Assembly (NCBI RefSeq): GCF_021869535.1
Contig: NW_026262668.1
Span: 930,001-994,000, forward strand
Length of the DNA: 64,000 nucleotides
Direction: 5' to 3'
Origin: Mytilus californianus
Taxonomy: Eukaryota
The notes beneath the pieces are model-generated. The model ran no database searches. It saw only the letters and a program-made list of their open reading frames with translations, and was not told the origin of the DNA. How positions within the stretch are numbered: the first letter of the stretch is position 1; each line of letters begins with the position of its first letter. The position numbers were made by a program, and so were the translations under genes. Below are positions 3,128-63,846 of this stretch, in pieces.

Positions 3128-6100
3128 GAAAAAGTTAGATGAAACAACAGCTGAACTAAAGAAAACGTCACGTCTTCTGGAAGAAGAAAAACATAAAACT
3201 GATGCTTTACTGTACCAAATGCTTCCACAGAAAGTCGCTAATGATTTGAAAAATGGAATAACAATAGCAGCAGGTGAGTGGATTTTCATTTAACCTAAAG
3301 TGTATAGTATTTTTTTAGTAACTCTTTTTTACAGTTAGTTGTATAAAAAGCCTAATCAGTATGAAATACAACGAATACGTTAAATGATTATTTCTAGAAC
3401 CACTTAAATAGGAACACTAAAACGGACGTAAAATATAGTTAAAACTTTTTAGGATCAACTTTGCCAGAGGAATTTTTGGGTGAAATATACCCAAAATTGT
3501 GCATATTAGTTGACGTGTTTTGTACTTATACAGCCTTGACTGTAAAAATTTTGGCTTTTAGTCCTGATGTAATTAAATCCAAAATAGTGTCATCATTTGT
3601 CTCAGCTCCCAACGAAATTTTTCTCCTGGTTTGTGTGTTAAAAATGGTATGAAAGTAATAGTACAGTTATACCATATTCCAGAGAAATTTGAGGTAGTGA
3701 CTATCCTGTTCAGTGATATCGTTACCTTTACCAACATAGCCTCTGAGTGTTCTCCCATGGAAGTTGTTACCATGTTGAACAATCTGTATGCGAAGTTTGA
3801 CGAGAAAACAAATGAACATGATGTGTATAAGGTAAGAGGAAAAATTTGTTTGCTTCTTTGATCAAGTTTTAGAATTATGTTGAGGCGTTGAACATGTTTT
3901 ATATGCAAGCAACAAAACGTCGAGAAAATGGGGGTATTTACCCTTGTCCGCCTGTCCGTTGGTACGTCACATATAGGGTACACAGTTTGTCGGTTTAATT
4001 CTACGTACAGCTTTCGAGCTAGAACTTTTATAGTATGCAGATTGTTTATACATGTGTATAGTATCAGGATTTTGATATTCTTTATATTTTTTGCAAATGA
4101 TTTTTTTTCGTCATTTTTGGTAAAATTACCCATGCAGGGTACATGGTGTGTCTGGCTAAGCCATCCTACTGTTTTCAATCTTAAACTTTATACAAATGGA
4201 TTACATGGTTGTCCGCAGAAATCTAACGAGTAAATCCTTAAATAGTTTTTATTCTTGAACTTTTAAATTATGCAAGATATTATTAAGAGTGTGCATATTA
4301 TCAGATTTTGATTTTCTATAAATTTCCACAAATGAATAGATGTTGAACTTAATCATTTATTTGAAATTGTTTATGTTGGGTGCATTGATTTTTCATCTAG
4401 TAGCCGTTCATCATTGAAACAATTTGAATTATCTTCACTATTGTTGTTTAATTAAAGTTTTTTTTCTTTGAATAATTTGGTTAGTTTTTATTTTAGTAGT
4501 TAATTAGTTTAAAAACAGTTGATTCATTGTTTCTGGGGTTCACTTTTAAGGTTGAAACAATTGGTGATGCGTATATGATAGTCAATGGTTGTCCGGAAAT
4601 CAAAGAGATACACGTGCAAGCTGTAGCAAATTTTGCTATGGATATGGTAGAGGAGGCAGCTAAAGTAAAGTCTCCAGCTACAGGATTATCACTACAGGTT
4701 TGTGCTGATTGATTTGTTTTTAAGATAAAGAACATATTAAATGAAATAAATAATGTTTTAGTGAACCAGATAAACGAGAAAGCAAAGATTCTGATTCTGG
4801 TATTTTGTTTGTAATCGATAAGATTTCAAAATGTCTCATTGATAATTAAATACCGTTCTTTTCCTGGACTCTCACCACCCGAGACCTAAGCGTGACTTTG
4901 ATTCAAAGGCAAACAGTATACCGTGATATCAGGTTTGTTTAATTTGATTGTGAAAGTTTAATTGTATACAACCTGAAGTTATCTGATATACATTGTACCC
5001 CTTCTAAAGCAATGTGCTAGAAGATGTACGGCCATACACTCCATTTTGTCTCAACTTGTACAATAACTCGGGAAGCTTTAGGGCTTGCAAAATGTTTTCG
5101 GCGCTTTTCTTTCATTGGAATCTAGACATCCTTGTTAATTTAACTTTTGTTTACGGTTGACATGTACCATTATATAAATAACACATAGCTGAGAGGGTGA
5201 TAGAGCAGATTGTTACCCCGAGAAAACATTGTCAACTGAGGCGAAGCCAAGGTTCACAATGTCTTTTCGAGGGGTAACAATCTGCTCTATCAGCCTCTCA
5301 GATATGTGTTATTTAATTTATTTTACTGAATGTTCTGTTATTACTGTCGATTAAATTTCAAATTCAAAGTAATAAACTATGACGCCTTGTACATAACAAC
5401 CATCCGTATTTGATAAAGCGCAAACTTGATCAAGCGTCTCCGTGAAGGATAATAGAGTATTTGCCATAGGATAGAGTCGTATTTAATAAAGCGCACACTT
5501 GATCAAGCGTCTCCGTGAAGGGTAATAGAGTATTTACCATAGAATAGAGTAAATCAACACCCTCGTATTAACCAATCAAAATCTGGCATTTTGACATGAA
5601 GTTTAATAATAATATTCAACCCATATTTCTCATTATGCCCAACCCACTAAATGGCAGGGACATATAGTGTATCATATGTCCGATCTTCCGTCATTTTGAA
5701 ATCAAACAGTTGTTCGGACTTCTTTTCCGTTATGCCTGCAAATGTAGTGCAGATTTTGATACACAAGTGTATCATGATGTCGCACAGATCGACTTTGCGT
5801 CTCGTTCTGGTTGGCACACTTTTTGCGGTATTACGGCCCTTAAAAATTCATGAAAATTGTGCTTCTGCGGACTTTTTTGGCAATGCGGATATATCTTGAG
5901 CTGGTTTTTTTGTACATTGATGCTGTCTTGTAGATCTATTTTGCCTCTCGTTTCGGTTGATGGACACATCAGATCCGTTTCCATTCATATTGTTAGTATA
6001 AGGACACAATTTAGCAGTGGCGGATCCAGAGGGGGCGTAGAGGGCGTACGCCCTCCCTTTGCTTGCACTTTTTTTTTTTTTTTTTAAATGATTAATCAGA

Positions 6101-9024: not shown

Positions 9025-9952
9025 GACAGTATTAATTCAATTTTTATTCTACAATTTCTACAAAAGATCTTTTTCTCCATTAGAATAAAATCGTAGTTTC
9101 AACATATATGCTATTTTATGTTACTAAAATGAGAGATTTGTTTGTACTATAAAATGTTTTTTTTTGCTTCGTTTAAAATAAAAATTCTCAATAAAAACAA
9201 ACTGTTTTTTTTCTCACTTCCCATAAAGTTTGATGTCATGTTTCAACATATGAATTTATCCGTTTACAGATGTTGTCTATCAAAGTACAAACCATATTTG
9301 TCATAATGTTTTTTTTTACCGAGTAATGATTTGTGGTCATACATATGACTAAAATTCAAATATCCTCTTAAAAATATATATGTTTTTCAAATTTTCAAAC
9401 TCGTTTCTAAAATGTTTTCTGTGATTGATTTTATACTCAGATCATAAAAAAAAAACCAGCAAGCAACAGGAAAACAAAGAAAACAATACATTTGGCCTTA
9501 TTTAATATAGGAAATGTCTACTTGAAACAGACTGAATGCTTGTTATAGGCCTATACTACTTATTTCCTTTCTTAATACTTTTAAAACACGTGGCAGTATT
9601 TGTTTTTGAATTGTTACATCCTTCCATCATTTCCATTAGTAGTATCACCAAATAATATGATTATAGTAAGGGACTTCAAGGGAGTCAAATAACTCGCATA
9701 GCACTCATCAACCGGGACACATCAAATCAAATTTTGTTTGAAATTATGACACGTTTTGCAAAAGTTAATATTGAGAATAAGAACGTGTATCCCAAAATGC
9801 TGAAAACCCCTTTTAGGGATCCCGTTAAGAAGTTGGGTTTTCTATTCTGCAATTACCCAATAAAACTTCTAATTAAGACCGAGTCAGAATGGAATTTATC
9901 TACAGTCTTACATCAAGGCTTGAAATCTATCTTTCCAGTAAAAGTGACAGCG

Positions 9953-11639
9953 CCTGGGGGTTACTGACTATCCTATCGGGTATAACTGTGCCGACAGCAC
10001 TTGCCAAATCATACCCTGTTCTAACCAAAAAACATTGAAAAACATACCCTGTTCTAAACAGAAATATTGAAAAACATACCCTGTTCTAGACACGCTCAGA
10101 AAATGTATACCCTGTTCTAGACCGTATAAAATAAATGCTGTTCTAGACCCTGGTTCTAGACTGTATCTTAAACAGTTAAATAAGCGATCCTGTTCTAGAC
10201 AAATACTTTGTTTAAAAAAGACCCTGTTCTCACCAGCAGGGCATGAAAAAGCGACCCTGTTCTAACCAACAGGGCATGGAAAAGGAACCCTGTTCTAACC
10301 AGCAGGACATGAAAAAGGAACCCTGTTCTAACCAGCAGGACATGAAAAAGGAACCCTGTTTTAACCAGCAGGGCATGAAAAAGGAACCCTGTTCTAACCA
10401 GCAGGACATGAAAAAGGAACCCTGTTCTAACCAGCAGGGCATGGAAAAGGAACCCTGTTCAAACCAGCAGGGCATGGAAAAGGAACCCTGTTCTAACCAA
10501 CAGGGCATGGAAAAGGAACCCTGTTCTAACCAGCAGGGCATGGAAAAAAAAACCCTGTTCTAACCATCAGGGCATGGAAAAGCGACCCTGTTCTAACCAG
10601 CAGGACATCAAAAAGCGACCCTGTTCTAACCAGCAGGACATGAAAAAGGAACCCTGTTCTAACCAGCAGGACATGAAAAAGGAACCCTGTTCTAACCAAC
10701 AGGACATGAAAAAGGAACCCTGTTCTCACCAGCAGGGCATGAAAAAGCGACCCTGTTCTAACCAGCAGGACATGAAAAAGCGACCCTGTTCTAACCAGCA
10801 GGACATGAAAAAGGAACCCTGTTCTAACCAGCAGGACATGAAAAAGCGACCCTGTTTTAACCAGCAGGGCATGCAAAAGGAACCCTGTTCTAACCAGCAG
10901 GGCATGGAAAAGGAACCCTGTTCTAACCAGCAGGACATGGAAAAGGGACCCTGTTCTAACCAGCAGGGCATGGAAAAGGAACCCTGTTCTAACCATCAGG
11001 GCATGGAAAAGGAACCCTGTTCTAACCAGCAGGGCATGGAAAAGGAACCCTGTTCTAACCAACAGGGCATGGAAAAGGAACCCTGTTCTAACCAGCAGGG
11101 CATGGAAAAAAAAACCCTGTTCTAACCAGCATGGCATGGAAAAGGAACCCTGTTCTAACCAACAGGGCATGGAAAAGGAACCTTGTCTAACCAGCAGGAC
11201 ATGGAAAAGGAACCCTGTTATAACCAAACCAGCAGGGCATGGAAAAGGAACCCTGTTATAACCAGCAGGACATGGAGAAGGGACCCTGTTCTAACCAGCA
11301 GGGCATGGAAAAGGAACCCTGTTCTAACCAGCAGGGCATGGAAAAGGAACCCTGTTCTAACCAGCAGGGCATGGAAAAGGAACACTGTTCTAACCAGCAG
11401 GGCATGGAAAAGGAACCCTGTTCTAACCAGCAGGGCATGGAAAAGGAACCCTGTTCTAACCAGCAGGGCATGGAAAAGGAACCCTGTTATAACCAGCAGG
11501 GCATGGAAAAGGAACCCTGTTCTAACCAACAGGGCATGGAAAAGGAACCCTTTTTTAACCAACAGGGCATGGAAAAGCGACCCTGTTTTGCGGCACACTC
11601 GTACCACTAAAAATATAGGAAGTAACCCCCCCTCCCGGG
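9953..11639. mobile_element. MITE (CCCGGG-GGG-GTTACT TIRs, 8-bp TSD) containing a ~41-copy 33-bp minisatellite
   Basis: TSD tgacagcg at 9945-9952 and 11640-11647. Ends are cctggggggttact and agtaaccccccctcccggg. Internal array atggaaaaggaaccctgttctaaccagcagggc spans about 10217-11590. Confidence 0.85.
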
Positions 11640-47239: not shown

Positions 47240-50200
47240 ATGGCGACAATTGTTTATTTATTCAGCTTGTTGTTCATAGCGTTATCGACAAATGGTGAGT
47301 TCTGCATCACTGAGAATTTTTCTTACTGTAAACTGCAAGACAACCTGGCGGTATTTTGAAATATGCGTCATACGAACATACCTGTGCGATAAATATCAGT
47401 AAATAACAGACAGACACACGCAAAGTTCACTCGTATTTTCCTGATAGTTATTTTAATTTGCAAAATATAACACGAAGGAAATTGTTGATGATGTATATAC
47501 ACTTTACAAAATATATCATACGGTTTAAACAAAACAAAACGAAAATATTTAAACGTATATATTTCATTTTCTAGAAATTTCGGTAATAAAGGGAATTGAT
47601 TTGTTATGAATTAGGCCGTTAGTTTTCTTAATTGAATTGTTTCATATTTTTCATGTTGGGGCCTTTTATAGCCGACTATACGGTATGGGTTTTTTCATTG
47701 CTGAAGGCCGTACGGTTGCCTATAATTTCTTACATCCACTTCATTTGAACTTTGGTGGATAGTTATCTCATTGACAACTATACCATATCTCCTTATTTTT
47801 TTTAAAGGTAAGAAAAGGTACTTTTGTCCCTCGAATTAAGAAAAATAGACATTGAGCTATCGGAAATAAAGATAAATAATAACAATGCATTAGTCTATAA
47901 AACAAAAATAATAAATAATCCGACATATATTTGAGTTTTTTGCCTAACTAAACATTAGATTCGAGTATTTTGCCTAACTTAACATTAGATTCGAGTATTT
48001 TACCTAACTTAACATTAGATTCAAGTATTTTGCCTAACTTAAAATTAGATTCAAGTATTTTGCCTAACTTAACATTAGATTCAATTTGTTAGAAAATTTT
48101 ATCTACCGTTCCGCTATCGGCTATATATTTTAAAAAACTTCAAAAAGCATTCTGCTGATGAAATTGCTCTTCTAACAGGTAGCCTACATTCCGAGATTCG
48201 TTGGGACTGATGAATTCCTGCGTATTAAAATTTAACTATTCAATTTACAACTTTATTTTTTAAATATCTTAACATTTTTACTCCTAATAATAACTCCTTA
48301 ATATTGAAAATAATGAGAATTAACAAGAGAGGGTGCTAGCTACATTACTTTAATTCCAACAAAAGGCAATATAAAGTGAATAATCGCACTGTTATTCTAC
48401 TAGGAGTTGCATTGTTGACAGACTCTGGACAAGGAACATCTTCCAATAGTGGTGGTTCTACAAGTAACAATGGATTTGGAACAGGTTCTGGGTTTGGATC
48501 AGGGGGTGGTGGCCAGTCATCATGGAACGGTCATTACACTGATAAATCTTCGGCTTTTGGTGGCAGTTTCGGTAGTGTAGGAGGTTCTGGATCATCTGGT
48601 TCTGGGTCCTTATCATCTGCAACTGGGTCTGTATTATCAGGGGCTGGTTCTGCATTATCCTCATTAACAGGAGGTTCTGGTGGAGTAAGTTCAGCGTTAT
48701 CCTCATTAACGGGAGGTTCTAGTAGCAAAGGTGCTGGTGGATTTGAAAAAGGATCTATGGCTGAATTGAGTGCAGGTAGTTTTTCAAATGGATTTGGGTC
48801 TTCAGGTGGTAGTGGCTCTGGTGGAAGTGGAATGAGCTCCTTTGGTTCAGGTTTTGGAACTGGAAGTACTGGAAGCGGAAGTAGCTCTGGAACATTTGGT
48901 TCTGGTGGTAGTAGTGGAAGTGGAATGGGCTCTTTTAGTTCAGCTTTTGGAACTGGCAGTGGTACTGGTGGCGGCGGCTCTGGATCATTTGGCTCTGGTA
49001 GTGGAATGGGTTCATTTGGATCAGGAGGTAGCTCTGGGTCTTTTAGTTCTGGCGGCAGTGGATCTGGAACAGGTTTTGGATCAGGAAGTAGTAGTGGTAG
49101 TGGAAGTGGGTCGTTTGGGTCAGGCTTTGGTTCTGGGAGCGGTGGAAGTGGATCTGGTAGTAGTGGAAGTGGATCTGGATCGTTTGGATCAGGATTTGGA
49201 TCTAGTAGTGGTGGTACCAGTAGTGGAAGTGGAAGTGGAAGTGGATCATTTGGTTCTGGGTTTGGGAGTAGTGGCAGTGGATCTTTTGGATCGGGTTTCG
49301 GAACTGGCAGTAGTGGTAGTGGAACTGGTTCGTTTGGTTCAGGATTCGGTTCAGGTAGTAACAGTGGAAGTGGATCAGGGAGTGGCGCTAGTAGTGGATC
49401 TTTTGGTACTGGGTCTGGTAGTAGTGGTAGTGGAAGTGGGTCTGCTTCGTTCGGATCAGGAGGTGGAAACGGACAAGCAGGTCAGTTCTTCGGGTCATCC
49501 GGTTCATCGGGTTCTGCGGCGAGTCAATTTGGTAGTGCTTTAAGTTCGTCTGGAGGATCAGTTGGTTCAGCTGTTGCAGGCATAGTTTCGGGTGGTTCAT
49601 CAGGATCATCGAGTAGTTCGTCAGGTGGAACCTTCAACGGATTTGGCGGTGAGTTTATATGGTAAATACAAATAACACGTCATCATAAATACTGTGCGGA
49701 GTGTTTGGGGTTTGCTTTCACCAAGGACACTTAAAAGGCTGTAATTTAATTGATGAATAATTTGGAAAACAAAGTGACTTACGGTCTCCTATTCAGAATT
49801 CAAATGAACATTTAGTAATTTTGTTTTCGTCAAAATTATAACTTACGAAAAATGTTCCTGACCAAAAACATCAAAATATTCATTAAAAATCGATTACAAG
49901 TATAATGCATGATAATTGAAATCACAATGTACCTTCACGATACAATTGGTATAATTATAGACCCATCTCAACAAAGAACTGCACCGATAGACCGAATTTA
50001 CGTAACCATTGAAAGGATCCTGTAATCGTCTTCCTAATGTTAATTTCTGAGGAAAAGTGTAGTTCCTTACAAAGTTAGTCGTATATCTGCCAAACTTTTC
50101 CCGCCCGTTCTTGTCAAAAGAGTCATGATTAAAGTTTTATGATGACCTTTCAATTAATCTTAAATAATCTTAAGTAAAAAAAAAATACACCGATAGCTTT

Positions 50201-50298
50201 AGAATCTACCCTGAGCTAGTTCAGGACAATGAATATATTCAGAAATGAGAGATGTCTTAATGGAAGTAATTGATGGGAGCCCCCCCCCCTTTTCCCCG

Positions 50299-50360
<62 letters not shown>

Positions 50361-53300
50361 GTCTTTAACAAATCTGTATATCTTGATGTGAGTTGTTATA
50401 TCTAAATAAGTAATCAATAGATTTTAGATAATAAATGAATAATATGCGATGTTAATTGTACGATTGTTAGGTGGTACAATGGTAAACAACCAGGGAGGAT
50501 TCGACCCTAATACAGGATCATATCAACCAAATAAAGGACAACAAGCAACATCGGGGAAGTATCAGTATGCTGGGTTCTCACCAGACCAAATTAAAGGATT
50601 TGGTAAGTAAAACGTATTTAAAGTTTGCTAGGTACATTGTACATGTCATGTATTAACTCAAGAACCTAACACCGTCACGTTTATGGAAGGATTGATTTTT
50701 TTCACTTGCATTTTTGGGTCTAGCATGACACCCGCACAGACGGGGGCCTGAAATATACTGCATTTTTTCATTAATTCTGGTGTTTTTTAGGATGTATGTT
50801 CATGCAATCAATCCGTTGATGAATTGTACTATAATAGTGTTTTCATTATTTGTTCATGATATATTTAGGTAAAGACACTGGTATGAACAATGGTGATGGC
50901 GGGTGCTGCGACACTTCTGGTAAATGTAAGTATATCTCATTTTAGCTCATTCCACTGATGACATTTCAATCTTGTATGTCGAATGTGGAACTTCAGCTCT
51001 TGTCTTAACGTGACCTCAGCATATTAGCGAATGTTCAAAGCAATTTTGTTTGTCTATAAAGATGTAAGTCAAGATAATGGAACTCATTAAGTCGAACTTT
51101 ATAGAAACAACAAAATAAATCATAAAGATACGCAATTGACTTGAGTGAAAAAAATGAAAATCGATTCTTGAAGATCTTTACCATGTAGAATTGCTGTTTG
51201 AACAGACTTATTTTGCTACAGAATTGTATTTTTATTGTTATCTTTAAAAGCTGTAAAAGCATGTATTTTTTGCCTAGCTAAATGCCACATGTGAGTAAGA
51301 TCAGATGCAGAAACTTATAACTTATTCTCTTCATCCTGAAGACACTCTTAAAAGCCCAGAAAGACTACATTTTCTACATGTTTTGATTTCCTATGAGGGT
51401 TTTACAATTAAGCAGAAGTTGTAGCATGTAGTTCCTGTAACAAAGGGTATTCTAAGTTCACATGGTGCTGCTTCTATGACTTTCTGTTTCATTTCAATGG
51501 ATGTGGTAGCTGGTCTACGATAAGCAATAACATGCAGGGTATAAGTTTGAGATCAATGCATCCCTTCTGTAGAATGATTGCATGCAAGTGTTAACGGGTC
51601 ATCTCATATATATACTTTGGGAAAGGATGGTTTGACTACCAAACCAACCATAGCGTACATCGATTGCGCTTGAAAACATGGGGAAGGGTGTAAACGGTTT
51701 ATGGATTTGAACAGGAGAGAACAACAAAATTGGTTCTCTTTGTATGAAATGTATATTACAAGTAGCCAATAAGTCAACGATAGACAACTACATAAGATGC
51801 ATATCCTGTAAGAAGAACCAACAACATACTGTATTGTTAGATAATCATGATGTTCAAACCTCTGAAAAACCCTTATAGTTAAAAAATGTCGAGAAAAGCT
51901 TATCAACATCTTTAGATGCATTGCCATATATGCACACAACATAAGAACATTGCATATACTGCTTAGAAATTAATGGGACGTAAAACTAAATCCAAGTCAT
52001 GTTAGTGAGAGTACCCTACTTTTTTGGTTAGAAGCTGGTACGAAAAATAGCTTCTCAGTGATGAATTGTTATGCTAAGTTACATGATTGAAAACTACTTT
52101 ATATCTGAGAACTTTTAAGCAGTCGTTGAAACATAAAATGATATTCAAAATGAAAGTCTTGCATGCAATACCAAGTAACATGAACACACATCTTAAAATG
52201 AATTTGAAAACTCACGTAACAGAATTCGACCGTAAAACTAAGCTTAGTTTAATATAGTCAGGATCGTCTACTTTTTTGCCAATCGTCAGATTCTTCCATA
52301 TCTATTCCATAAGTTGAATGTCTGTAAGTCACAAAGGGGATAAGAAATCGAGACTGAACCGTGAGTGAAAACATAACATAAATCCGTGAACTGAAAGAGT
52401 GACCTACATTTGTTCGAAATAACTGGGCTTGTTTACACAGTTATTCAAAGTTCTAGAAATGTTGCAATTGCACATTAATGTACGTGGTTTATGTAAACCT
52501 GTGCAACAGTAGTTTCAATGAACACTAATTGTGAATGCACAATTTGACAAAAATGTTACTGCAGTAACCTCTATAAACGTCGCTATTGTCCCTTTAAACG
52601 ATTTATAAAAAAAACTGTCTTTGTATATAAAAAAGCCCGTTCAGTTTGTACGATAGTCCAGGACGTGCGCCACAGCTTCTAACGTGAATACCTTGATTGA
52701 TTGTTGCTGGTTACAAGTAAGTTATTTAAAAAATGTTGTCTATATGTAAAGGTTGAAGTAATCTCTTGTACAGTTTTACGGATGCCATTGTGATAAAGTT
52801 CAACGTTACGGAATATCTAAATCACAGATGTCCACGGATATGTTCCACTTGCGGAAATTAGTTTGGTTCCACTAGTGGAGCTAGAACTATTTACCGAGGT
52901 TTTTTTTAAGTTGACTCGTGTTGTTTTTGCCTTAGTTTTTAGTGGTGTATTTTGTGCTATTTTAGATATGACTGTCTGTTAGTTTTACTGGTAACAGTCT
53001 ATCCTTTTTCTGCTAAACCGTGTTTTCTTTTCAAAGTTGACAAGCAATGGTTTAAACATTTTTGGTGTCTTAGGGTTAGACAAAAGACATTCGTCAATCC
53101 CTGATACAAGTCATCAAGACGACCCTTCCGAAGCACCTGTGCTCATGTCCCGACTTCCAGTCCATTTAATGGTGTTCAATCTTTAGTTTTATGGACTGTT
53201 TTGGCTATGGTACATGTATTATCTGTCTTTCTTCAACAGATAGTTTTTATACTCTTAAAATCATCTCCCACATTTTGTACTTACTACAAAATCAACACAA

Positions 53301-56300
53301 AGGATTCTAGAAATATAATTTAATGTGTATCATGTTTTTCTTCAGCCAAAAATATGGGATGGCAAAGTACAGGCGATGGCAGCTTGAAAGGTTGGGCTGG
53401 TAGCAACGGAAATCCTGGAGCAAACTCTCATGGTTGGGTATCAGAAAACGGCGGCAAAAGTGGCGGTGTAGCAGGAGTTATTAAAGATGCAGCCAAGGCT
53501 GCAGTAGAATCAGCAGCTCAGATGGCAAAGGCAGCAGGTAGAAATATTTATATTCTTCTATCGCTAAATATTTTTTTTATATTATTAAGATCTATTCTAT
53601 GTGATTGACTTTTTATAACACGACAAAAATCTTCAAAAGACATCATAATGAAACAAGGGCCAAAAAGAAATCCCTTGAAAAAATGAAAACAACACGTTAT
53701 AAATTTCATGAGTCCGAAGCGCTATTGTGGATTTGCCTTCACCAGGAACGCTCAATGCCAAATATTTGAAAGCAAAAGATGTATTAAGTTGAAAAAAATA
53801 AAAAGCTATATAACCAATAATGACCTAAAATTAATAATCAGTAACGAACCTTTTCTTCCACTTAAGAATGACATGTATTTGTATTTAGTGACGGAAAAAG
53901 GATGAAAATTATATGCATATGGAGTTGTTAAAAGTTTTCCCCCTATTTTTCCATTTAATATTTCCCCCTTTTATATTTCCATATATTTTTTAAATGTTAA
54001 CAAAAAGTTGTTGTCTGTTGTTAAAGAAACATTCTGCACACCCGGCTATTTGAGTCTTTGCTCCATTTTCCAGTAATAATAAACACAGAAACTCTATAGC
54101 CAGGGGCGGATCAAGGATTTTTGAAAGGGGAGGGGCATAATTCGACAAAACTGTATATAAACTGAAAAAAATGAACTATTGTATGCTACGAAATCATATT
54201 AATCGTGCGAAACATGAAATTTAAAAAAACCATTGTGATCAAAGGATATCCATCACTGATAGCCAGTCTTTTACTATAAGTGATTGCCAGGTCTTACCAT
54301 TACGATACTAGACATACCAGTAAAAGTCAGAGAATATTCATTTATTAAAAACAATCCTAGTTCTGAAAATGTTTGTATTCAAAGTATGCTGACAAACAGT
54401 AATCTATCAAATACCGATTGTATTTCCGCTGTAACAGTTACCTAACATTTCAACTTGGTTTTTGTAAAATCGCGTGCTATTTGCCAATCAAAATAGCATC
54501 ACGCAATAACCTCTTTACCAGAGAAATATGAATTTGCTATGCTGATAACATGGTTTACATCCCATTTCTCCAAAGGCTTTTGTTTTCAATCCAAATTCAG
54601 AGAAAACACCTTTAGACGTACAGATTTCATTTTCCATTTTGATGTCAAATCCATGTTTCTTCAAATCATAAAATAAGCAATTGGAAACAGACAGTGCTTG
54701 GTCTTTGTTGTCGGCCTTTAGAAGAAGTACAGGTGGAGCATCTTCGATAAACTCAATTGCTTTATCATCTTGAATACCCTCAATTTCATTCAAGTCGCGT
54801 GGAAATAAACCGTCCAGATCATCTATAGGCGCAGGGATTTTTAATACATGGTGTTTTTCACTGCAATACACGTAATCAGGTGCCGGCTCTTCTTCTTCCT
54901 GCAGTGAAAGTAAATATACTATTGTTTGTCCATGTGCTGTAGCTTTCACGAAATCACGTGCTTCTTTTATCATCTTTTCCTTAATTTCCATGTAATTTGG
55001 AACTGGGTCAGGTCTGTCACCGCAAAATGGAAATATTGGTGGCAACTTCATTATCTTATCGCGGAGTTCAACAAGCGCAAAATAGTCAGCCTCTCGGAAA
55101 ACTGCAGAAAGAAAATCCTTAGGTGGTAGGTAAGTGCTGTCTCGGAGAAATTCTAAAATATGTTCAAAGTAGTCACCGTTTCTGTCAATGAAATACTGTC
55201 CATCATCGGTCACATCTAATTCATACCGGCCGCTAAACATAGCTCCTAGCATTGATTCCGGATATTTCCTCAATGTTTCAAGCCTTGTTTCAAAATGCCT
55301 ACCACCTACATTAAGTTTCACAACTACAGGAATCTATGAATAAAGAAAAGTATATATACATAACCATCATTGAATGTCAGATTCAGATTGTCTCCCATTT
55401 TGTCATGTAGGGGGCCTTTTATAGCGGACTATATAGTATGGGTTTTGCTCATTGTTGAAGACCGTACGGTGACCTACAGTTGCTTAAATATGATTCTTCT
55501 AGATAGCTTTCTCATTGGCAATCATACCACATCTCCTCTCACACACACACACACAACAAAGAAAAATTGCAACGAACAACTCATAGATTGATGATTGTTT
55601 CATTTGTTTTACTTTGTTTGTTTTTGTTTGATTTTTGTGCGGACACCTGTCTGTTGTTTAACGGTTGTTGTAAGAAGATATTGTTTTCATTTGATTTATC
55701 TTATCACAAAACATATAATCATGTACAGACATTGTGAATATTTCACTTTCAAGATAACGAGATGTTTGCTGAAGAGTCGCTGATTTCGCGTATTAGAAGA
55801 ATTATTTACTAGGGTTTCATGAACACAACAATACACGAAAAACAAATAAGAAAGAAAGGACAATCAAGGGCAAAAACTCTTGAACGGCAAAATGTGAAAT
55901 ATGAATATCAAACTTGACCTCCATCTTGTAATTAGCAAAAGCATACAAACATTTTAAAGCATTGGTTGAAAGGTTCAAAACTTATCAAAATTCAATTTTT
56001 AATTAATCAAGTACCACAACTCTTGAATGGAAAGAGTAAAATGCAAAAGTGAAAATCAACAGTATCGAACTTGACCTCAATCTTGTCATTAGATACAGCA
56101 CATTAAGTTTTAAAAAGTATTTTTTTAGTTTTTTAACACAGATTCCAAGATATTTCACGAAACGAAATCCATTTTCCGATCAAGGACCATAACTCCTGAA
56201 CAGGAATGATGAAAATCGTCTATTTCAATCTTGATTTTGTCTTCAGTAACAATTATTAAATTATGAAATCATTGGTCGATACGTTCACGAGTTTCTGAAA

Positions 56301-59300
56301 GGAAACGACATAAAAGGTTTATTTAAAAAAAACAATCAACAACCATAATTCCTAAACGGCAAATGTGTTAAACCTGTCCCCTAATTTGTTATCAGTAACA
56401 ACATATTTGAATTTAAAAATTATTGGTAGAACGGTTTTCATGAGTTAACGCATGGAAACAGTTGGAGCCTCACACACCCATCGTACAACCCTAAATCAAT
56501 ACATGTAACCAGATTTTTTTATCGAAAAAAAAACCGGTCAAAATTAAAAATTTGTATTTTCAAAAAATATTCTAGATAGAGTCTCTTAATCATGATGAGA
56601 AGCTGCTTTCTAAGTGTCATAAAATTCCATAAAGGTTTTACAAAGTAATTGATGTCTAAATACTAAAATGCCAGACTGTTTGTAAATTGATTTGATTGAT
56701 TTTTGGTGTTTTAACGCCACTTTTAAGCACCGCTTTTGGGCTATTTCGTGGCGGCCAGTTTTTATTGGTGGAGGAAGCCGGAGTGCCCGGAGAAAACCAT
56801 CATCTTCGCTAGCCAAGGGTTACGACCCATTTCCCTCCTCTCCACCCTTGGCAGATTGAGATAGAATTTCGGAGACACAAGGTAATGATTTTCATTGGTT
56901 GCAGTCGAAACTCGCTGCATCCAATCAAAAAGCGCCTATAACATGATCACGTGTAAATCTAGAAAGTGTATGTAAACAATTGCCACGTGCTTATTGTGCA
57001 ACAAGTCTTTACATTCCTAAACATACAACTATATTTAGTGACAATTTGAATGTTTTTCGTCAACTAATAGAGGTTCATGTGTATGTTTCTTGCACAAATG
57101 CATGAATGTCAACGTATATTTTCGTTTCCTGCTTTACCAAGTGTGTAGAATCTAGACGCTATCGTGTTTTTACCTCTAAATTGAGGAGTTCAAGTTCTAC
57201 CATTGGTCTAGAATAATGTATTCGGAATGGGCGTGACTTTAATCTACCGATAGATGGCGCAACATTGTTATTACAAATGTTGCCTTAATCTGCCAAGGGT
57301 GGAGAGGAGGGAAGTGGATCGTTACCCTTGGCTAGCGAAGATGGAAAACCACCGACCTTCGATAGGAAAACTGACAATCCTAGTCAATTAAGATTGGAGT
57401 CGAGTGCACCCACACGAGCGGGGTTCGAACTCACAACCTCAGTGTTGACTGGCTAGTGATTACAGTAGTAACTACTTAGACCACTCGGCCACCGAGCCCC
57501 CCTGTTTGTAAATAAACTGATGATTAAGGCTCTTTTTTACAATGATATGCAATGAATTTCGTTATATTGATATATTGAGGAGACTTGACTTACATTATAT
57601 ATCTTTGGTTTTACGCCTATGTTTTACTGGAGTACTTCTTCTGTGGTATTATTTCTAGTTTATTTTTCCAAATTGAATTTTAAGTAACAATACTTAAAAC
57701 CTAAAGTAGATCTTATATCTTTCAGCAAAAAGTTAACAACAATATTGCCTTATGCTGACGAATTTTTTACTATATGTTTTATTGTAGAGCAACCAAAACT
57801 ATTCTGTTTATATTGTGTAATCAAATCAACTTCACAAATTCAATAATAAATTTGCTCAGATTTGGGCACACTTATAAATATATAAAAAATACATTATGAC
57901 ACACCAGCAGATAGATATCTAGTTCACAAGAAGTCTAGAACTTTTATTGTATTGTATTATTCAAAAACGTTTTAATCAAATCGTTTCATTATTCAAACAC
58001 GCCTAAATTAATCATCGTATTATTCAAACACACCTAATCATTTTATTATTCAAACACACCTAAGCCTTAACGATGACACATTCCTTTTATTCATATTTCA
58101 TATAAGCGAAAAAAAAATTCAGTTTATAAATTACAAAAGTTTGTCTTAAATATGAGAATAGAACCATAATAGAACCTTAACCACTGTTTCTGGTTTGTCA
58201 CAGGGGCGACACTCAAATTATTGGTTTTATAGGATCAGTTTTTAATCGTTCTGAGGAATGTTTAGGTTTGAGTGTGTATATGTGAATATTTGGATTAATT
58301 ATGCTCTGATACGTCATTACTTAAATGTTTTACCTCCTTCTGAGAGTCCGGACACTGTGCGTGCAAAGCCATTTCGTGGTTCAAGTCACACAGTTTACGT
58401 CTGGGGAGAGAAACGAACATACTTCGTGATGATTAGAATGATAGACCGATGAGGATCCAGGTTTTTCGAAAGGGGTGTGGGTGCACAAAAAGGCAACTTT
58501 ATCAATTGTACTTGTAAATAGTCTATACATTAAACATATATGGAGCTACATAAGGGAGCCCGGGCCTCATGCCCTCTCCCCGAACCCGCTTATGATAGAA
58601 GCTTTATAATTGTTTTGTTTGGTGTGAAAACTAACCATGTCTGACATCATGAGTTCTGCATAACATGCAACGAATTATTCTCAAATTTAATGTCCCTTGA
58701 ATTTATTAGAATAAAAGATCAATGATGATTATACTACTGTTACGCGCGTCCTTGATCAAAACGGATTAATTTGCGTAAATCGCAGCAACTTTGGTTGACT
58801 TGGTTGACATTAATCATTATAATTATTTACAAAAAAAAAAGAAAAGGAAAAACTATGACACAGATAAAGAAAGTCCTTTTACTAACTTGTGAAACCTTAT
58901 TAATAACAAAGTTGTTTTTTTTTATTTTTGATAACTGTGTTTTTCCTGAATCAACAAAAAATGTAACCAAAATATATGTAGATCTGTTTACAAATTGTGA
59001 CCTACATACAAATATACTGTTTTAATGTGTACTAGTATTGTGTACAAGGTTTCCATTTCGAATATCTATAAAATGACGTTGTTTGAATGAAAATTTTAAA
59101 ATATTGTAAATACATGGCAATTTTCTTGAAGAATTTGATACAGTTCAACATATTTCAAAATGAAAATGGTAAATAACGTTTTCGGCCTTATTTTTTTGGT
59201 TACGAAATATTTTCATTAAACATGTTAAGCTGGAACATTTTGAATTGTTTTAACTTTTCTTTGGCCTAGAATCAAAGCATTTCAAGGCATTTTATTTAAA

Positions 59301-62300
59301 AGGTAAAGAAAAACAAATAAATAAAATATTTTGCAGTAGAAATTCTAGTGACAAAACATAATTTTCTTTCCAAATGAGGCATTTCAGTGTTTTCGTCTTC
59401 TCATCAATTATAACACTATTAATCAACGTTCTGTTAATATTTAATTCACTTATAAAGACACAATATGTATGATAATAAAACAATATTATGATTTTGTGCT
59501 AAACACTTCGAATGTGAGGACCAGCAGGGTAAATGAGTGTAATCAAGGTATAATAATGATGCTATGTGAACAAAATTCTTGCTTACCATACTAAGAATAT
59601 TTTACTACATACTGGCTGTATATTTGTAACAGGAACACACGGTACTTGGTATATACACCCAAAGAAATCTAAGAAAAAATAGCAACTCATATTCTGCATT
59701 AACTAACATTTCTGAAATGGATTCATTAAGACAAATTCGGAGAGATAATTTCTAAAATGCAAATAATTCGAGAAGGCAGTTCCCACATGGGCATTGATGA
59801 AGGCCATTGGCGTATCCAGGTGGTGTTCCGAAGGTACAAACCCTCCCTTTTTATGAATATATTTTTGTTTTTTGTTTTGTTTTTTAATTATGCGAACGGT
59901 TCATGGTGTTCTGGGGGGTTGGAACCCCCTTTTCAAAATAACTGGATCCGCGCCTGAATACGTCTTAATAAACTAATAATTGTAAAAAAAAATAATTAAA
60001 TATTTTCATAGACAATTTTTTAAAACTTGAACTTTAAGTCTTTATATCAGCAGATATATATATATATATAGTTATATCAAAAGTTCTCTTGACAAGCAAA
60101 ACAACGGTGAACCCGAAATCTTAGTTGTTGAAAATGATAGATTTCGGGAAATGTGTCATGCTAATGACTATCAGGAACAGTCTGTAAAAATTGATGTATT
60201 GAAAGAATATTAGACATTTTGAATACATATTTTCCAGATTTATTTTATCAACATTAACATTTGTTTTTTTTTATCAGAAATAATGATCATGGTCATCGGG
60301 TTGTCTTCTGCTTAAAGTTTTTGATTGCCCTCTTCGTGTTTTCCTTTTTATTAAAAAAGTTTAAGGTTAAAAGCGGGTATGGGTTTTGCTCATTGTTGTC
60401 AAAAGGCTGTACGGTGACCTATAGTAGTTATTTAAACTTCTACGTCATTTGGTCTCTGATGGAGAGTTGTCCAATGACAATCATGATACCACATCTTTTT
60501 ATATCAAATGGCTAAACTTATATTACCTGCAGTTAATGTTTCTATTGATTCTATAATAATCAGAGATAATAATTCTCGATACTTTTGCGAACCTTTCACA
60601 GATAACCTGGCTGTCATTGACGTTGAGTTATATTTGATATATCTTTATTTCAGCCAAAGCACTGGCAAACTGTTTCAATCCTTTGTCTTATGCGATGGCA
60701 TGCCAATTTGTCGTAGATCCAAGAATAACATTAGCACAACAGCACACAGACAACCATACAGATAAAGCTACAGCAATGAAGTCAATGACCACGTGGTGTG
60801 TCGCGCCATCAAACTATTTTACCAAACTTCCACCAAGATCTAGGTACACCGTTAACTCTCATTTTTTTTAAGTATTCGTGGTCTTTCACTGAACAAGTTA
60901 ATATTCCCTTTAGATTTTTTCTTCTTCAAGAATTTAACAATGTAGTTCGCACATGTAACATAAAATTAAACGAACAACTTGAGTACCAGAATAGTACCCT
61001 CTGAAAATCGATATTATGCTTTTTGCTTTTGAGTGTTATGTTAAATAAATAATTTAATTCTTTATGAATGTAAGGGGGCCGCCATTTGATTTTCGGGGAG
61101 AGGGAGAGGTGTGCAGGATGATTTTTTTTTCATCAGTGTTGCCATTGTTTGATTGTAGCTACAAATGTGACAAGTGTCCGACGATGCCCGCACCTGGTGG
61201 TTATGGCTGTCCAAGTTTAACTGTTATGAGGTATATAGAAAAATTAGCAGCCAATGGACCAGTGACGGTAAGTTTCAAATTTCCGCAATCTGATAATAAT
61301 ACAGATTCTGTGTCCTTGCTTCGCTTACAACGAAGTGTTGTCAGATACTTGTAAGTAAAGAGTGCATTTCAATCAGATTGCTTCGTTTACAACGAAGTGT
61401 TGTCAGATACCTGTAAGTAAAGCGTGTATTGCAATCAGATTGCTTCGCTTACAACGAAGTGTTGTCAGATACTTGTAAGTAAAGCGAGTATTTCAATCAG
61501 ATTGTTTCGCTTACAACGAAGTGTTGTCAGATACCTGTATGTAGAGCGTGTATTTCAATCAGATTACTTCGCTTACAACGAAGTGTTGTCAGATACTTGT
61601 AAGTAGAGCGTGTATTTCATTCAGATTGCTTCGCTTACAACGAAGTGTTGTCAAATACTTGTAAGTAAAGCCTGTATTTCAATCAGATTGCTTCGCTTAC
61701 AACGGAGTGTTGTCAGATACTTGTAAGTAGAGCGTGTATTTCAATCAGATTGCTTCGCTTACAACGAAGCGTTGTCAGATACCTGTAAGTAGAGCGTGTA
61801 TTTCAATCAGATTGCTTCGCTTACAACGAAGTGTTGTCAGATACTTGTAAGTAGAGCGTGTATTTCAATCAGATTGCTTCGCTTACAACGAAGTGTTGTC
61901 AAATACTTGTAAGTAAAGCGTGTATTTCAATCAGATTGCTTCGCTTTCAACGAAGTGTTGTCAGATACTTGTAAGTAGAGCGTGTATTTCAATCAGATTG
62001 CTTCGCTTTCAACGAAGTGTTGTCAGATACTTGTAAGTAGAGCGTGTATTTCAATCAGATTGCTTCGCTTACAACGAAGTGTTGTCAGATACTTGTAAGT
62101 AGAGCGTGTATTTCAATCAGTTTGCTTCGCTTACAACGAAGTGTTGTCAGATACTTGTAAGTAAATCGTGTATTTCAATCAGATTGCTTCGCTTACAACG
62201 AAGTGTTGTCAGATACTTGTAAGTAAAGCGTGTATTTTAATCAGATTGCTTCGATAACAACGAAGTGTTGTCAGATACCTGTAAGTTAAGCGTGTATTTC

Positions 62301-63846
62301 AATCAGATTGCTTCGCTTACAACGAAGTGTTGTCAGATACTTGAAAAAGTAAAGCGTGTATTTCAATCAGATTGCTTCGCTTACAACGAAGTGTTGTCAG
62401 ATACCTGTAAGTAAAGCGTGTATTTCAATCAGATTGCTTCGCTTACAACAAAGTGTTGTCAGATACCTGTAAGTAAAGCGTGTATTTCAATCAGATTGCT
62501 TCGCTTACAACGAAGTGTTGTCAGATACCTGTAAGTAAAGCGTGTATTTCAATCAGATTGCTTCGCTTACAACGAAGTGTTGTCAGATACCTGTAAGTAA
62601 AGCGTGTATTTCAATCAGATTGCTTCGCTTACAACGAAGTGTTGTCAGATACTTGTAAGTAGAGCATGTATTTCAATCAGATTGCTTCGCTTTCAACGAA
62701 GTGTTGTCAGATACTTGTAAGTAAAGCGTGTATTTCAATCAGATTGCAAATTTCCGCAGCATCTATTTCATTGAAAACTCTAAAAAAGAATTTACTCATG
62801 GTTTATTCATTTCCTGGGAAGTTTTAAAACTCTAGTTATATTAATAGCCTTGTGTAGGAATTTATCATTTGTGTGGAATATACGTCAAAGAGACACCAAC
62901 CCAACGACACACTTGGAATTAAAAAACATATATAGATGTAAAAAACTATAAAAATTATAAACAAGTGTCAAAATCTTGAGATATTATGATAATTGTTGGA
63001 AGTAAACAGATTAAGGATAATAAATCTAACACACAAAAAAACACCTCTTCAACGTTTGTATCCTCGTGCATCACTGAAGAAACATTGATTGTACAAAAAG
63101 ACTTAATAAATACTATACAATGGTTATTAAAAAAGTCCATGCTCACATTTGTTCGCCTCTTTTCGCAGAAAACTTATATTAAAACGATCACCATTTTACA
63201 GTTGGTATTTGCCAATCATTTAGTCTTGATTTGCACAATCAATCTATTAGTGACTGAAGTATGATGAATCATACAGTCGAAATATAAGTTGCTTCTTTTA
63301 TTTTGTGGACTTATATTTTCCTTTTCATCTTTTTTTTTTTGTTGTTTTTGATTGCACCATTGAAATATTCTTGCTATTTTACATGATTTTTTTTTTTCAT
63401 TGTGCACTATTTGTAGCAATCTAGAAATACTTTCTAAAAGAATAATACAATAAACTCAATATGGTATTAATATGGTGTTTGGGTCAAATTCAAGCACTCG
63501 CAAAATTCTGGCAAGGGTCGACACAATGAATATTTAGAAATTAAGTGTTTAAAGGAATTGTGTGTATAAAGCCCCCACTTCTTATCAACGAATTGATGTA
63601 AATAGAATGCCATATTTGGATTAAATTTTGCCTTTACAGATAATATCTACATTTTAGGTAAATGATTTTGCTGGTGGCTGCCATGATTGTAATTCACCAC
63701 ATTATGCAGGAGATGCAGTTGATCTGAAAAAGGATATGCTCAGAACAAGTGAATTCTGGGTAGAATGCCAGAAAATGGGAGGATGGTTCTTTGACGAGGG
63801 AGACAGTCTTCATTGTGATTTCAGAGCAAAGAAAGGAATCAGATGA
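47240..63846 (+). CDS. Secreted Gly/Ser-rich protein with a C-terminal M15/Hedgehog-N-like zinc peptidase domain (8-exon model, 722 aa)
   Basis: Exons 47240-47294 (signal peptide MATIVYLFSLLFIALSTNG), 48404-49648, 50471-50602, 50869-50925, 53346-53537, 60654-60843, 61159-61267 and 63658-63846. All introns are GT-AG with matching phases (1,1,1,1,1,2,0). Total 2169 nt, open from ATG to TGA. Linkage of the 5' and 3' halves is inferred from phase only. Confidence 0.65.
47941..48084. repeat. 30-bp minisatellite, about 5 copies (intron 1)
   Basis: tgcctaacttaacattagattcgagtattt repeats with period 30. Confidence 0.95.
48404..49648 (+). CDS. Gly/Ser/Phe-rich low-complexity exon (GSGSGSFGSGFG repeats)
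   Basis: 1245-nt open exon bounded by ctag| and G|GTGAGT. Gly and Ser codons are synonymously diversified, which argues for a coding sequence rather than a DNA satellite. Confidence 0.9.
50305..50357. repeat. (GA)n microsatellite
   Basis: About 26 GA units. Confidence 0.95.
52624..52722 (+). promoter_or_regulatory. Candidate internal TATA promoter and non-coding first exon
   Basis: TATATAAA at 52624-52631, Inr-like ATAGT about 30 nt downstream, ATG-free stretch, and donor AA|GTAAGT at 52717. The next acceptor (53346) is followed by aaaaatATGG. Confidence 0.35.
54515..55333 (-). CDS. BTB/POZ (T1-type) domain protein, KCTD7/KCTD14-like; nested antisense in intron 5 of the Gly/Ser-peptidase model
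   Basis: VKLNVGGRHFETRLETLRKYPESMLGAMFSGRY...YFIDRNGDYFEHILEFLRD...AVFREADYF. The C-terminus VPNYMEIKEKMIKEAR...KFIFLW* resembles the KCTD7/14 tail. Acceptor ttcatag|ATT at 55333. Possible tiny first exon ATG TCT|gtacat at 55732-55727. Minus-strand AATAAA at 54346-54341. Confidence 0.9.
   Translation of the reverse strand: MPVVVKLNVGGRHFETRLETLRKYPESMLGAMFSGRYELDVTDDGQYFIDRNGDYFEHILEFLRDSTYLPPKDFLSAVFREADYFALVELRDKIMKLPPIFPFCGDRPDPVPNYMEIKEKMIKEARDFVKATAHGQTIVYLLSLQEEEEPAPDYVYCSEKHHVLKIPAPIDDLDGLFPRDLNEIEGIQDDKAIEFIEDAPPVLLLKADNKDQALSVSNCLFYDLKKHGFDIKMENEICTSKGVFSEFGLKTKAFGEMGCKPCYQHSKFIFLW
56690..57500 (-). mobile_element. tRNA-derived SINE (V-SINE-like core) split by a MITE; partial copies at about 8545-8655 (+) and 27650-27760 (-)
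   Basis: The minus strand starts ggggctcggtggccgagtggtctaag (A-box), has gagttcgaaccc (B-box) and core ggttttctccgggcactccggcttcctcc, and ends gtggcgttaaaacacc...(aatc)n. Confidence 0.75.
56801..57343. mobile_element. 543-bp MITE with ~57-bp TIRs and 9-bp TSD (MULE-like)
   Basis: catcttcgctagccaagggt...cccttggcagatt at both ends, with a few mismatches. TSD is gaaaaccat / gaaaaccac (56792-56800 and 57344-57352). Confidence 0.85.
59805..59956. mobile_element. Short MITE of the CA(G/T)TGGCG(G/T)ATCC family
   Basis: cattggcgtatccagg ... ctggatccgcgcctg. Related half-elements at about 54100 and 58450. Confidence 0.5.
60654..63846 (+). CDS. Zn D-Ala-D-Ala peptidase (M15)/Hedgehog-N-like domain, three exons
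   Basis: Spliced sequence: AKALANCFNPLSYAMACQFVVDPRITLAQQHTDNHTDKATAMKSMTTWCVAPSNYFTKLPPRS|SYKCDKCPTMPAPGGYGCPSLTVMRYIEKLAANGPVT|VNDFAGGCHDCNSPHYAGDAVDLKKDMLRTSEFWVECQKMGGWFFDEGDSLHCDFRAKKGIR*. It contains SxHxxGxAxD (H-x6-D) and a downstream His. Confidence 0.85.
61286..62746. mobile_element. TIR element consisting almost entirely of a 62-bp tandem array (about 23 copies), with 10-bp TSD
   Basis: TSD caaatttccg at 61276-61285 and 62747-62756. 9-bp TIR caatctgat / atcagattg. Unit ttgcttcgcttacaacgaagtgttgtcagatac(t/c)tgtaagta(a/g)agcgtgtatttcaatcaga runs from 61316. Confidence 0.85.

Follow-up and report, generated by a model that had tools for sequence, protein, structure and literature searches.

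The 64,000-nucleotide (nt) stretch of Mytilus californianus genomic DNA analysed here (contig NW_026262668.1; hereafter the window) contains eight coding exons on the plus strand at positions 47240–63846. All acceptors are AG and all donors are GT, and the first five introns are all in phase 1. When joined, the exons comprise 2169 nt and encode 722 amino acids (aa) followed by a stop codon. At the N-terminus of the product is a hydrophobic signal peptide (MATIVYLFSLLFIALSTNG), which is followed by a 415-aa Gly/Ser/Phe block, three short Gly-rich modules that bivalves have conserved and a 161-aa domain containing ten cysteines. Based on these sequence features alone, the protein is predicted to be secreted. 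The eight exons probably constitute one gene, as suggested by their arrangement in other bivalves. On balance, we favour the account in which this single gene of M. californianus encodes a secreted 722-aa protein that combines a disordered block with a LAS-fold domain of bacterial type, and we consider this account as a whole reasonably likely. An earlier reading of the same DNA (the original prediction) had proposed eight in-frame exons with canonical splice sites, encoding a signal peptide, a block of ~415 aa, linkers with a Cys-Cys pair and an Ala-rich segment, and a 10-Cys domain. Rebuilding the model from the sequence gave the same 722-aa product, and the joined translation has the same order of parts.

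Exon 1 (47240–47294) carries the start codon and the signal peptide (MATIVYLFSLLFIALSTN plus 1 nt) and ends at the phase-1 donor ATG/GTGAGT. Its first position is also the start of the coding sequence of an NCBI gene model (gene A; position 3887 of the fetched NCBI locus L001 corresponds to window position 47240). Exon 2 (48404–49648) encodes the 415-aa low-complexity block, with six copies of FGSGFG, three Lys/Arg and four Asp/Glu residues, and contains the island SSWNGHYTDKSS. Exon 3 (50471–50602) encodes a conserved Gly/Asn/Gln linker module (MVNNQGGFDPNTGSY...AGFSPDQIKGFG), which shares 64–70% identity with its equivalents in Dreissena (L002 11193–11330) and Potamilus (L003 6933–7064). Exon 4 (50869–50925) encodes the MNNGDGGCC module with a conserved Cys-Cys pair and ends at the phase-1 donor AAAT/GTAAGT. 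It is a speculation that this cysteine pair could cross-link the protein. Exon 5 (53346–53537) contributes a Gly/Trp-rich linker (NMGW, GWAGSNGN, HGW) and an Ala-rich helix that continues into exon 6, and this helix is modelled across the exon 5/6 junction with predicted local distance difference test (pLDDT) values of 87–93. The remaining exons form the C-terminal domain. Exon 6 (60654–60843) supplies its N-terminal helices (KALANCFNP...LAQQH...DKATA), exon 7 (61159–61267) the segment SSYKCDKC...APGGYGC...YIEKLAANGPVT, and exon 8 (63658–63846) the half with the zinc motifs (GGCHDCNSPHYAGDAVD ... DEGDSLHCDF) together with the stop codon (63844–63846).

The C-terminal ~160 residues can confidently be modelled as a disulfide-rich domain of the LAS fold, the fold of Hedgehog-N and the zinc DD-peptidases (MEROPS clan MD), in which helices pack against a central antiparallel sheet. 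The AlphaFold2 model of the domain, computed with an 18-sequence alignment of the domain family (A1), has a pLDDT of 89.5 and a predicted template modelling (TM) score of 0.87. The conserved positions of A1 include the His in LA--H, the Asp in DNA, RSSY, GxCH, S-x-HY-x-G-x-A-V-D, the Glu in DEG and H-x-H-C. When the model was compared with the PDB by Foldseek, the top 27 matches were all Hedgehog-N domains (probability ~1.0, TM ~0.4, 87–95 columns), followed by the zinc DD-peptidase of S. albus G (1lbu), Ply500 and MepA. Re-alignment with VIA returned LAS/M15 entries only, with Z scores of 7.6 for Hedgehog-N, 6.3 for 1lbu, 6.2 for MepA and 4.5–5.4 for VldE, LdcB, LysECD7, Ply500, VanXYc and ChiX. 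Over its full length, the domain is best matched outside the molluscs by AFDB clusters that bear the names 'Carboxypeptidase' and 'Peptidase M15A C-terminal domain' (TM 0.6–0.69). In the ESM Atlas, the top feature match is a mollusc cluster, the structural neighbours of which are clusters of Actinomycetota proteins with PG_binding_1 and carboxypeptidases (TM 0.93). These results bear out the M15/Hedgehog-N fold named in the original prediction. The placement of the domain in the clan by profile searches is upheld in part. The A1 profile matches the N-domains of Sonic and Indian hedgehog exactly across the zinc motifs (E ~1e-3), and Streptomyces homologues (see below) were found, but no Pfam M15 or HH_signal model reaches its threshold. 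Searches with single exons against Pfam and PDB sequences gave no match for the domain exons. The relatives of the window protein score 13–17 bits against Peptidase_M15_3, below the cut-off of 23.2 bits, and the window protein itself has no match to this model.

Among solved structures, the Hedgehog-N domains (ShhN, IhhN and DhhN) are the best match, and the motif GHHSEESLHYEGRAVD...HIHC of Sonic hedgehog (Shh) corresponds to GGCHDCNSPHYAGDAVD...SLHC in the window protein. However, only ~90–115 residues superpose, and the match over the whole domain is better to M15A-like proteins. As the window protein has neither an HH_signal hit nor a Hog/Hint domain, with the stop codon directly after the LAS domain, the window gene is not a Hedgehog. 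A further lead, Lophohog, was also rejected, since Lophohog is described in papers as a Hog domain with a unique N-terminal domain and not as a Hedge-only protein. The clan MD/M15 peptidases (1lbu, MepK, Ply500, VanXY, LdcB) and the LAS endopeptidase MepA share with the window protein the LAS fold and the zinc motif composed of H-x6-D and a terminal His. Several of these peptidases carry wall-binding partner domains, as do the mollusc paralogues of the window protein. In comparison with them, the window protein lies below the Pfam M15 threshold, has no sequence match in the PDB and has an altered H-x-H motif.

The domain is, judged from the sequences retrieved, a member of a mollusc-wide family that is unrecognised by Pfam. 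A phmmer search with exon 8 against 1.84 billion representative proteins found 27 relatives, and the identity of exon 8 to the copies of other mytilids and Dreissena is 92–95%. A profile search returned 23 proteins, the named sources of which are all bivalves or gastropods (Ostrea, Ruditapes, Pinctada, Mactra, Mya, Dreissena, Lottia, Littorina, Haliotis, Gigantopelta, Babylonia, Nucella and Plakobranchus) except the sea urchin Diadema. The N-terminal partner of the domain differs among members. Some carry a bacterial-type SH3b domain (sub-threshold Pfam matches), four (P0004, P0016, P0019, P0022) carry one or two beta-defensin-like six-Cys repeats, and three (P0018, P0020, P0041) carry VWA domains. 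P0041 and P0018, which come from JGI/IMG metagenome contigs, have several VWA domains ahead of the domain and have kept neither His of H-x-H (S-V-T-C or S-V-M-C). In addition, an uninterrupted open reading frame (ORF) that is open at its 5' end in a Logan contig (L004; SRR26439021, 1–913) joins Pro/Gly-rich elastin-like repeats (GVPSPGG...) to the same domain, so low-complexity partners are not unique to the window gene. This member has S-I-H in place of H-x-H. Another Logan contig (L005) was considered as splice evidence and rejected, because it is genomic and only exon 8 matches it (84%). In a maximum-likelihood tree, the bootstrap of which had not fully converged and the backbone of which is not resolved, the Gly-rich proteins of Mytilus and Dreissena group together (support 100/99) on a stem of 2.13 substitutions per site, with tips of 0.13 and 0.23. 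The long stem and short tips fit a burst of change followed by strong constraint.

The closest published parallel in animals is provided by the rusticalin-like proteins of tunicates, amphioxus, coral and Trichoplax, in which beta-defensin-like repeats precede a C-terminal MD-clan peptidase and for which gene transfer has been proposed (PMC6339383). The rusticalin C-domain was reported to be closest to Ply500 (M15C), and the authors did not find such proteins in molluscs (PMC6339383). Peptidase M15 has been reported in Metazoa for Trichoplax only, with the co-option of phage lysozymes by bivalve genomes cited as a precedent (PMC7379824). Likened by their description, the rusticalin-like proteins and the window protein are both secreted animal proteins with a C-terminal MD-clan peptidase domain of presumed bacterial or phage origin and a non-bacterial N-terminal module. 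They differ in that this module consists of defensin-like repeats in the former and of the Gly/Ser/Phe block, which has no Cys, in the latter, and in that the closest relative is Ply500 in one case and Hedgehog-N/M15A in the other. The mollusc paralogues P0016 and P0019 combine two beta-defensin-like repeats with the domain, as published for rusticalin-like proteins. The architecture had not been recognised from described proteins in the original prediction; its N-terminal partner is indeed new, but the general theme has this precedent.

Bacterial relatives were found by a pattern scan with A2, an alignment of the SH3b-type mollusc members, over one genome per prokaryotic species. The scan returned 12 loci (L006–L017), all from Streptomyces. 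In translation, the ORFs at these loci show a signal peptide, then two PG_binding_1 domains (1.7e-35), a Gly-rich linker and a C-terminal domain with shared motifs (...YHVSG-VDN..., SNY, EIAGGDHSSNSNHYKGIAFD, DEGNHVHC). The mollusc and Streptomyces alignments match each other in hhalign over 120 columns (98.9%, E 1.4e-17), and the window domain alone matches L007 in BLASTP (E 2e-8). Of the known systems compared, the Streptomyces proteins are the nearest to the window protein in terms of homology. Like it, they are secreted and have a Gly-rich linker before the homologous C-terminal domain. The motifs H-x-SG-x-x-D, SNY, E-I-AGG-x-H-S-x-x-S-x-HY-x-G-x-A-x-D and DEGNHVHC are shared between the two. 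In contrast to the window protein, with its Gly/Ser/Phe block, ten cysteines and (D/E)-S-L-H, they carry peptidoglycan-binding domains, keep H-x-H and do not have the set of disulfide cysteines. The Streptomyces C-terminal domain is unrecognised by Pfam and NCBIfam, and a PDB sequence search with the protein gave matches through PG_binding_1 and none for the C-terminal domain. The domain is thus placed in a divergent, unannotated branch of the LAS superfamily, which in bacteria is attached to peptidoglycan-binding modules, and the Streptomyces proteins appear to form an unannotated family of LAS-type wall hydrolases. The bacterial-type character claimed in the original prediction is supported at the sequence level by these homologues; the direction and number of transfers are not proven by this link. 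A tblastn search of the domain against phage genomes gave no match.

The candidate zinc site of the domain is largely preserved. The H-x6-D motif is present in exon 8 as HYAGDAVD, which aligns to HYEGRAVD of Shh, and its His and Asp occur in at least 90% of A1. When the window protein is aligned to Shh, equivalents of the zinc ligands H141, D148 and H183 (roles from PMC6027127) are all kept. A Glu conserved in the family five residues before the last His is kept as well and aligns one position after E177 of Shh. Moreover, the His of GGCH is kept and is aligned to the second His of GHH in Shh. The H-x-H motif of the LAS fold, with a catalytic first His and a zinc-binding second one, is altered to S-L-H (DEGDSLHC). 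Ser has taken the place of the first His and the second remains, whereas the canonical paralogues have H-x-H. Since the first His is lost, activity may be altered or absent. The Ser that replaces it is preceded by an acidic residue, with D-S-L-H in this genome and E-S-L-H in the other mytilid copies and Dreissena. In M15 enzymes of the VanX/VanY type, an ExxH motif supplies the catalytic base. The change to (D/E)-S-L-H may thus have rewired catalysis instead of abolishing it. We consider it somewhat more plausible than the reverse that the C-terminal domain is zinc-binding and recognises the stem peptides of peptidoglycan, and only tentatively propose that it hydrolyses them.

The reading that competes best with the favoured account also assumes one gene, but regards the LAS domain as a non-hydrolase. 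In that case the domain would depend on zinc to bind either peptidoglycan or some endogenous ligand in the matrix, and the protein would serve in pattern recognition or matrix organisation, like the non-proteolytic uses of Hedgehog-N. A role in mediating association with the extracellular matrix has been reported for the zinc centre of Shh (PMC8052667). The loss of the first His in Mytilus, Dreissena and the other mytilid copies speaks for this reading, as does the loss of both His in P0018 and P0020 of the same family. The very long stem branch followed by strong conservation also suggests a changed function. On the other side, neither the zinc triad nor the conserved Glu nor the GGCH His has been lost, and the acidic residue three positions before the ligand His resembles the ExxH of VanX/VanY. 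We regard a pure binding module as possible, with a probability well below that of the account given above.

The other question is whether the locus harbors one gene or two. The NCBI sequence of the locus (L001) has 0 mismatches to the window over 20,647 nt, and two genes are annotated on it. Gene A (47240–52982, 501 aa) uses exons 1–4 exactly and then an alternative acceptor at 52966, which leads to a 17-nt terminal coding piece (52966–52982, plus strand; ...CDTSGKYMTVC and stop). Gene B (53354–63846, 223 aa; P0029 = XP_052092343.1, LOC127728753) is identical to the translation of exons 5–8 from Met 53354, and its product has no signal peptide. The exon starts and ends coincide with the NCBI annotation of the same DNA in seven of eight cases. 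The long junction 53537->60654, which spans an antisense BTB/KCTD gene, is already used by NCBI. As the NCBI models use all the other junctions, only 50925->53346 is unannotated. The original prediction had held that ORF-based annotation would miss the gene. Both halves are in fact annotated, although as two genes rather than one. A literature search found no published papers mentioning these accession numbers or locus tags.

The single-gene structure is backed by the corresponding loci of Dreissena polymorpha (L002) and Potamilus streckersoni (L003), where the original prediction had suggested that the same architecture be sought among bivalves. Both loci show the same colinear order on one strand, namely the signal-peptide exon, the Gly/Ser block, the equivalents of exons 3, 4 and 5, and the domain exons to exon 7 or 8. 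The layout of the window gene thus recurs across three distant bivalve orders. The equivalent of the 4->5 junction is crossed by existing models in both species. P0028 (Dreissena RefSeq, 370 aa) starts inside the Gly/Ser block and continues to the stop codon, and P0002 (Dreissena GenBank) and P0046 (Potamilus) open with the MNNG-GGCC Met of exon 4 and extend into the domain. The exon-4 donor is in phase 1 in all three species, and in each of them exactly 5 nt separate the AG of the exon-5 acceptor from the Asn codon of the conserved N-M-G-W that follows. In addition, the coding conservation among the three species reaches upstream of Met 53354. The conserved position of the acceptor indicates that Met 53354 is an internal residue and that intron 4 is orthologous to introns spliced in the other annotations. 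The signal peptide is found only on the upstream models, and complete members of the domain family begin, as judged by eye, with a hydrophobic N-terminus resembling a signal peptide. A scan of 53538–60653 for an alternative signal-peptide exon gave weak candidates only and no convincing one. The best of these (55591–55669, with a GTAAGA donor) was rejected, since NCBI splices exon 5 to exon 6 and this junction is shared by the other species.

The alternative of two independent adjacent genes would consist of a 501-aa secreted Gly/Ser/Phe protein ending at 52982 and a 223-aa protein starting at Met 53354, with their in-frame join a by-product of the phase-1 introns. The NCBI calls on L001 show just this split, the acceptor at 52966 leads to a stop after five codons, two models are also annotated in Dreissena and Potamilus, and one junction in three is in frame by chance. 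However, the 223-aa product would be a 10-Cys domain of extracellular type without a signal peptide, unlike the complete family members. In the models of Dreissena and Potamilus, the counterpart of its Met 53354 is an internal residue, and the acceptor is conserved at 5 nt ahead of the Asn codon. Furthermore, the annotations disagree on the split point. It lies between exons 4 and 5 in Mytilus, within exon 2 in Dreissena RefSeq, and between exons 3 and 4 in Dreissena GenBank and Potamilus, so that in the NCBI annotations exon 4 counts as part of the upstream gene in Mytilus but of the downstream (domain) gene in Dreissena and Potamilus. Around a frame change in the low-complexity block, both Dreissena models cover a common stretch of one strand (L002 10001–11200). 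Neither AATAAA nor ATTAAA is present between 52982 and exon 5. Two separate genes are thus unlikely, and we infer that the NCBI split into 501 and 223 aa is either an artefact of the annotation or the sign of a minor, shorter isoform. It is possible that a short isoform with the scaffold alone ends at 52982.

Several features of these loci are described for completeness. In the Gly/Ser block of Dreissena, the reading frame shifts within ~20 nt (L002 ~9900–10000, CM035921.1), where the overlapping NCBI models have 436 and 370 aa; this looks like a 1-nt assembly indel or a real frameshift. In Potamilus, the 194-aa model ends in unrelated residues, and the upstream 495-aa model reads past the exon-3 donor into a hydrophobic tail. 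The 7.1-kilobase (kb) intron 5 of the window gene contains a complete BTB/KCTD gene on the minus strand (54515–58372), which is separate from the 722-aa protein. It matches Pfam BTB_2 (1.6e-18), its main coding exon lies at 54515–55321, and the NCBI model has 285 aa (L001 11162–15019). The orthologous intron of Dreissena is only ~1.1 kb long and does not contain this gene. Most of intron 7 is occupied by a 62-bp satellite (61316–62747, 23 copies, 94% matches), which yields many spurious 39-aa ORFs in all three frames. A 30-bp tandem repeat of five copies (47934–48084) is located in intron 1, and an (AG)28 microsatellite (50303–50358) in intron 2.

The block encoded by exon 2 is, from its composition, an almost uncharged and intrinsically disordered Gly/Ser/Phe low-complexity region. 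It contains 37% Gly, 36% Ser, 8% Phe and 4% Ala, with seven charged residues and no Cys. Its repeats are of the FGSGFG and GSGSGS types, with only short imperfect repeats in the DNA. The original prediction had called the block silk-like. Ala-rich, GAGAGS or poly-Ala crystalline repeats are absent from it, so this description is not apt. A Pfam search of exon 2 gave no match, and a protein homologue search with the block, which is uninformative because of its low complexity, found none at E<=0.001 among 8000 candidates. Sequence conservation in the block is limited to islands, of which W(N/D)G(H/Y)Y(T/K)D is an example. That the block has antimicrobial or membrane activity of its own, like the Gly-rich antibacterial proteins of insects and arachnids, and cooperates with the lytic domain instead of being a structural scaffold, is improbable, because it is almost uncharged and very long, unlike cationic Gly-rich peptides, and has no evident processing sites, even though paralogues pair the same domain with beta-defensin-like repeats, an antimicrobial-type module, and such cooperation has been proposed for rusticalin (PMC6339383).

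Besides the altered H-x-H motif, a number of observations weigh against the favoured account of one secreted protein with a disordered block and a LAS domain. The evidence for the junction 50925->53346 consists of conservation, two genes are annotated in Mytilus with two models in each of the three species, and a complete antisense KCTD gene lies inside intron 5. In the Potamilus locus (L003, JAEAOA010001566.1), the 10 kb that follow exon 7 yielded no counterpart of exon 8, the exon with the zinc motifs. The block has kept its position and composition, but its sequence is barely conserved (shuffle z of 1.9–3.9 against Dreissena and Potamilus). As for the fold, no Pfam M15 model (PF01427, PF05951, PF08291, PF13539) or HH_signal model was hit at threshold, nor was any such hit found in the window exons (for HH_signal none at E<=1). 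The scores to solved structures are middling (Foldseek E ~0.03, Z 7.6), yet all structural matches belong to one fold class and the motifs fit. Finally, no result here ties the protein to byssus, shell or another matrix or supports the anti-biofilm role suggested in the original prediction.

For the function of the fused protein, we put forward with some reserve that the Gly/Ser/Phe region replaces the wall-binding module of the paralogues and retains the domain in a secreted material, be it a gel, mucus or structural matrix. The bivalve subfamily would then have exchanged a wall-targeting module for a disordered scaffold that holds the domain in a secreted matrix, mucus or condensate. A more far-reaching idea, which we consider rather a long shot, is an ancient bivalve-specific neofunctionalisation that predates the split of mytilids, dreissenids and unionids. 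A LAS domain of actinomycete-like bacterial origin, its catalytic H-x-H rewired to (D/E)-S-x-H, would have been permanently fused to the uncharged Gly/Ser/Phe block as a condensate-forming scaffold, and the protein would be a building, processing or signalling part of byssus, periostracum, shell or mucus and not an immune lysin. If true, this would be an independent parallel to the origin of Hedgehog-N from a bacterial DD-peptidase.

What is new here is that a bacterial-type LAS/MD-clan domain of an animal has a conserved low-complexity partner and a modified motif. Provided that the fused protein exists, a conserved gene has been mis-split in three public bivalve annotations. Our analysis also points to a mollusc-wide family of bacterial-type zinc-peptidase domains that is invisible to Pfam. 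This family adds to the animal co-option of wall hydrolases from bacteria and phages, as in the rusticalin-like proteins and the phage lysozymes of bivalves, and within it the targeting module has been swapped repeatedly. The altered active-site motif and the unusually strong conservation make the Gly/Ser/Phe subfamily a concrete and testable candidate, either for an enzyme in the secreted material of mussels or for a Hedgehog-like change in the function of a LAS domain.

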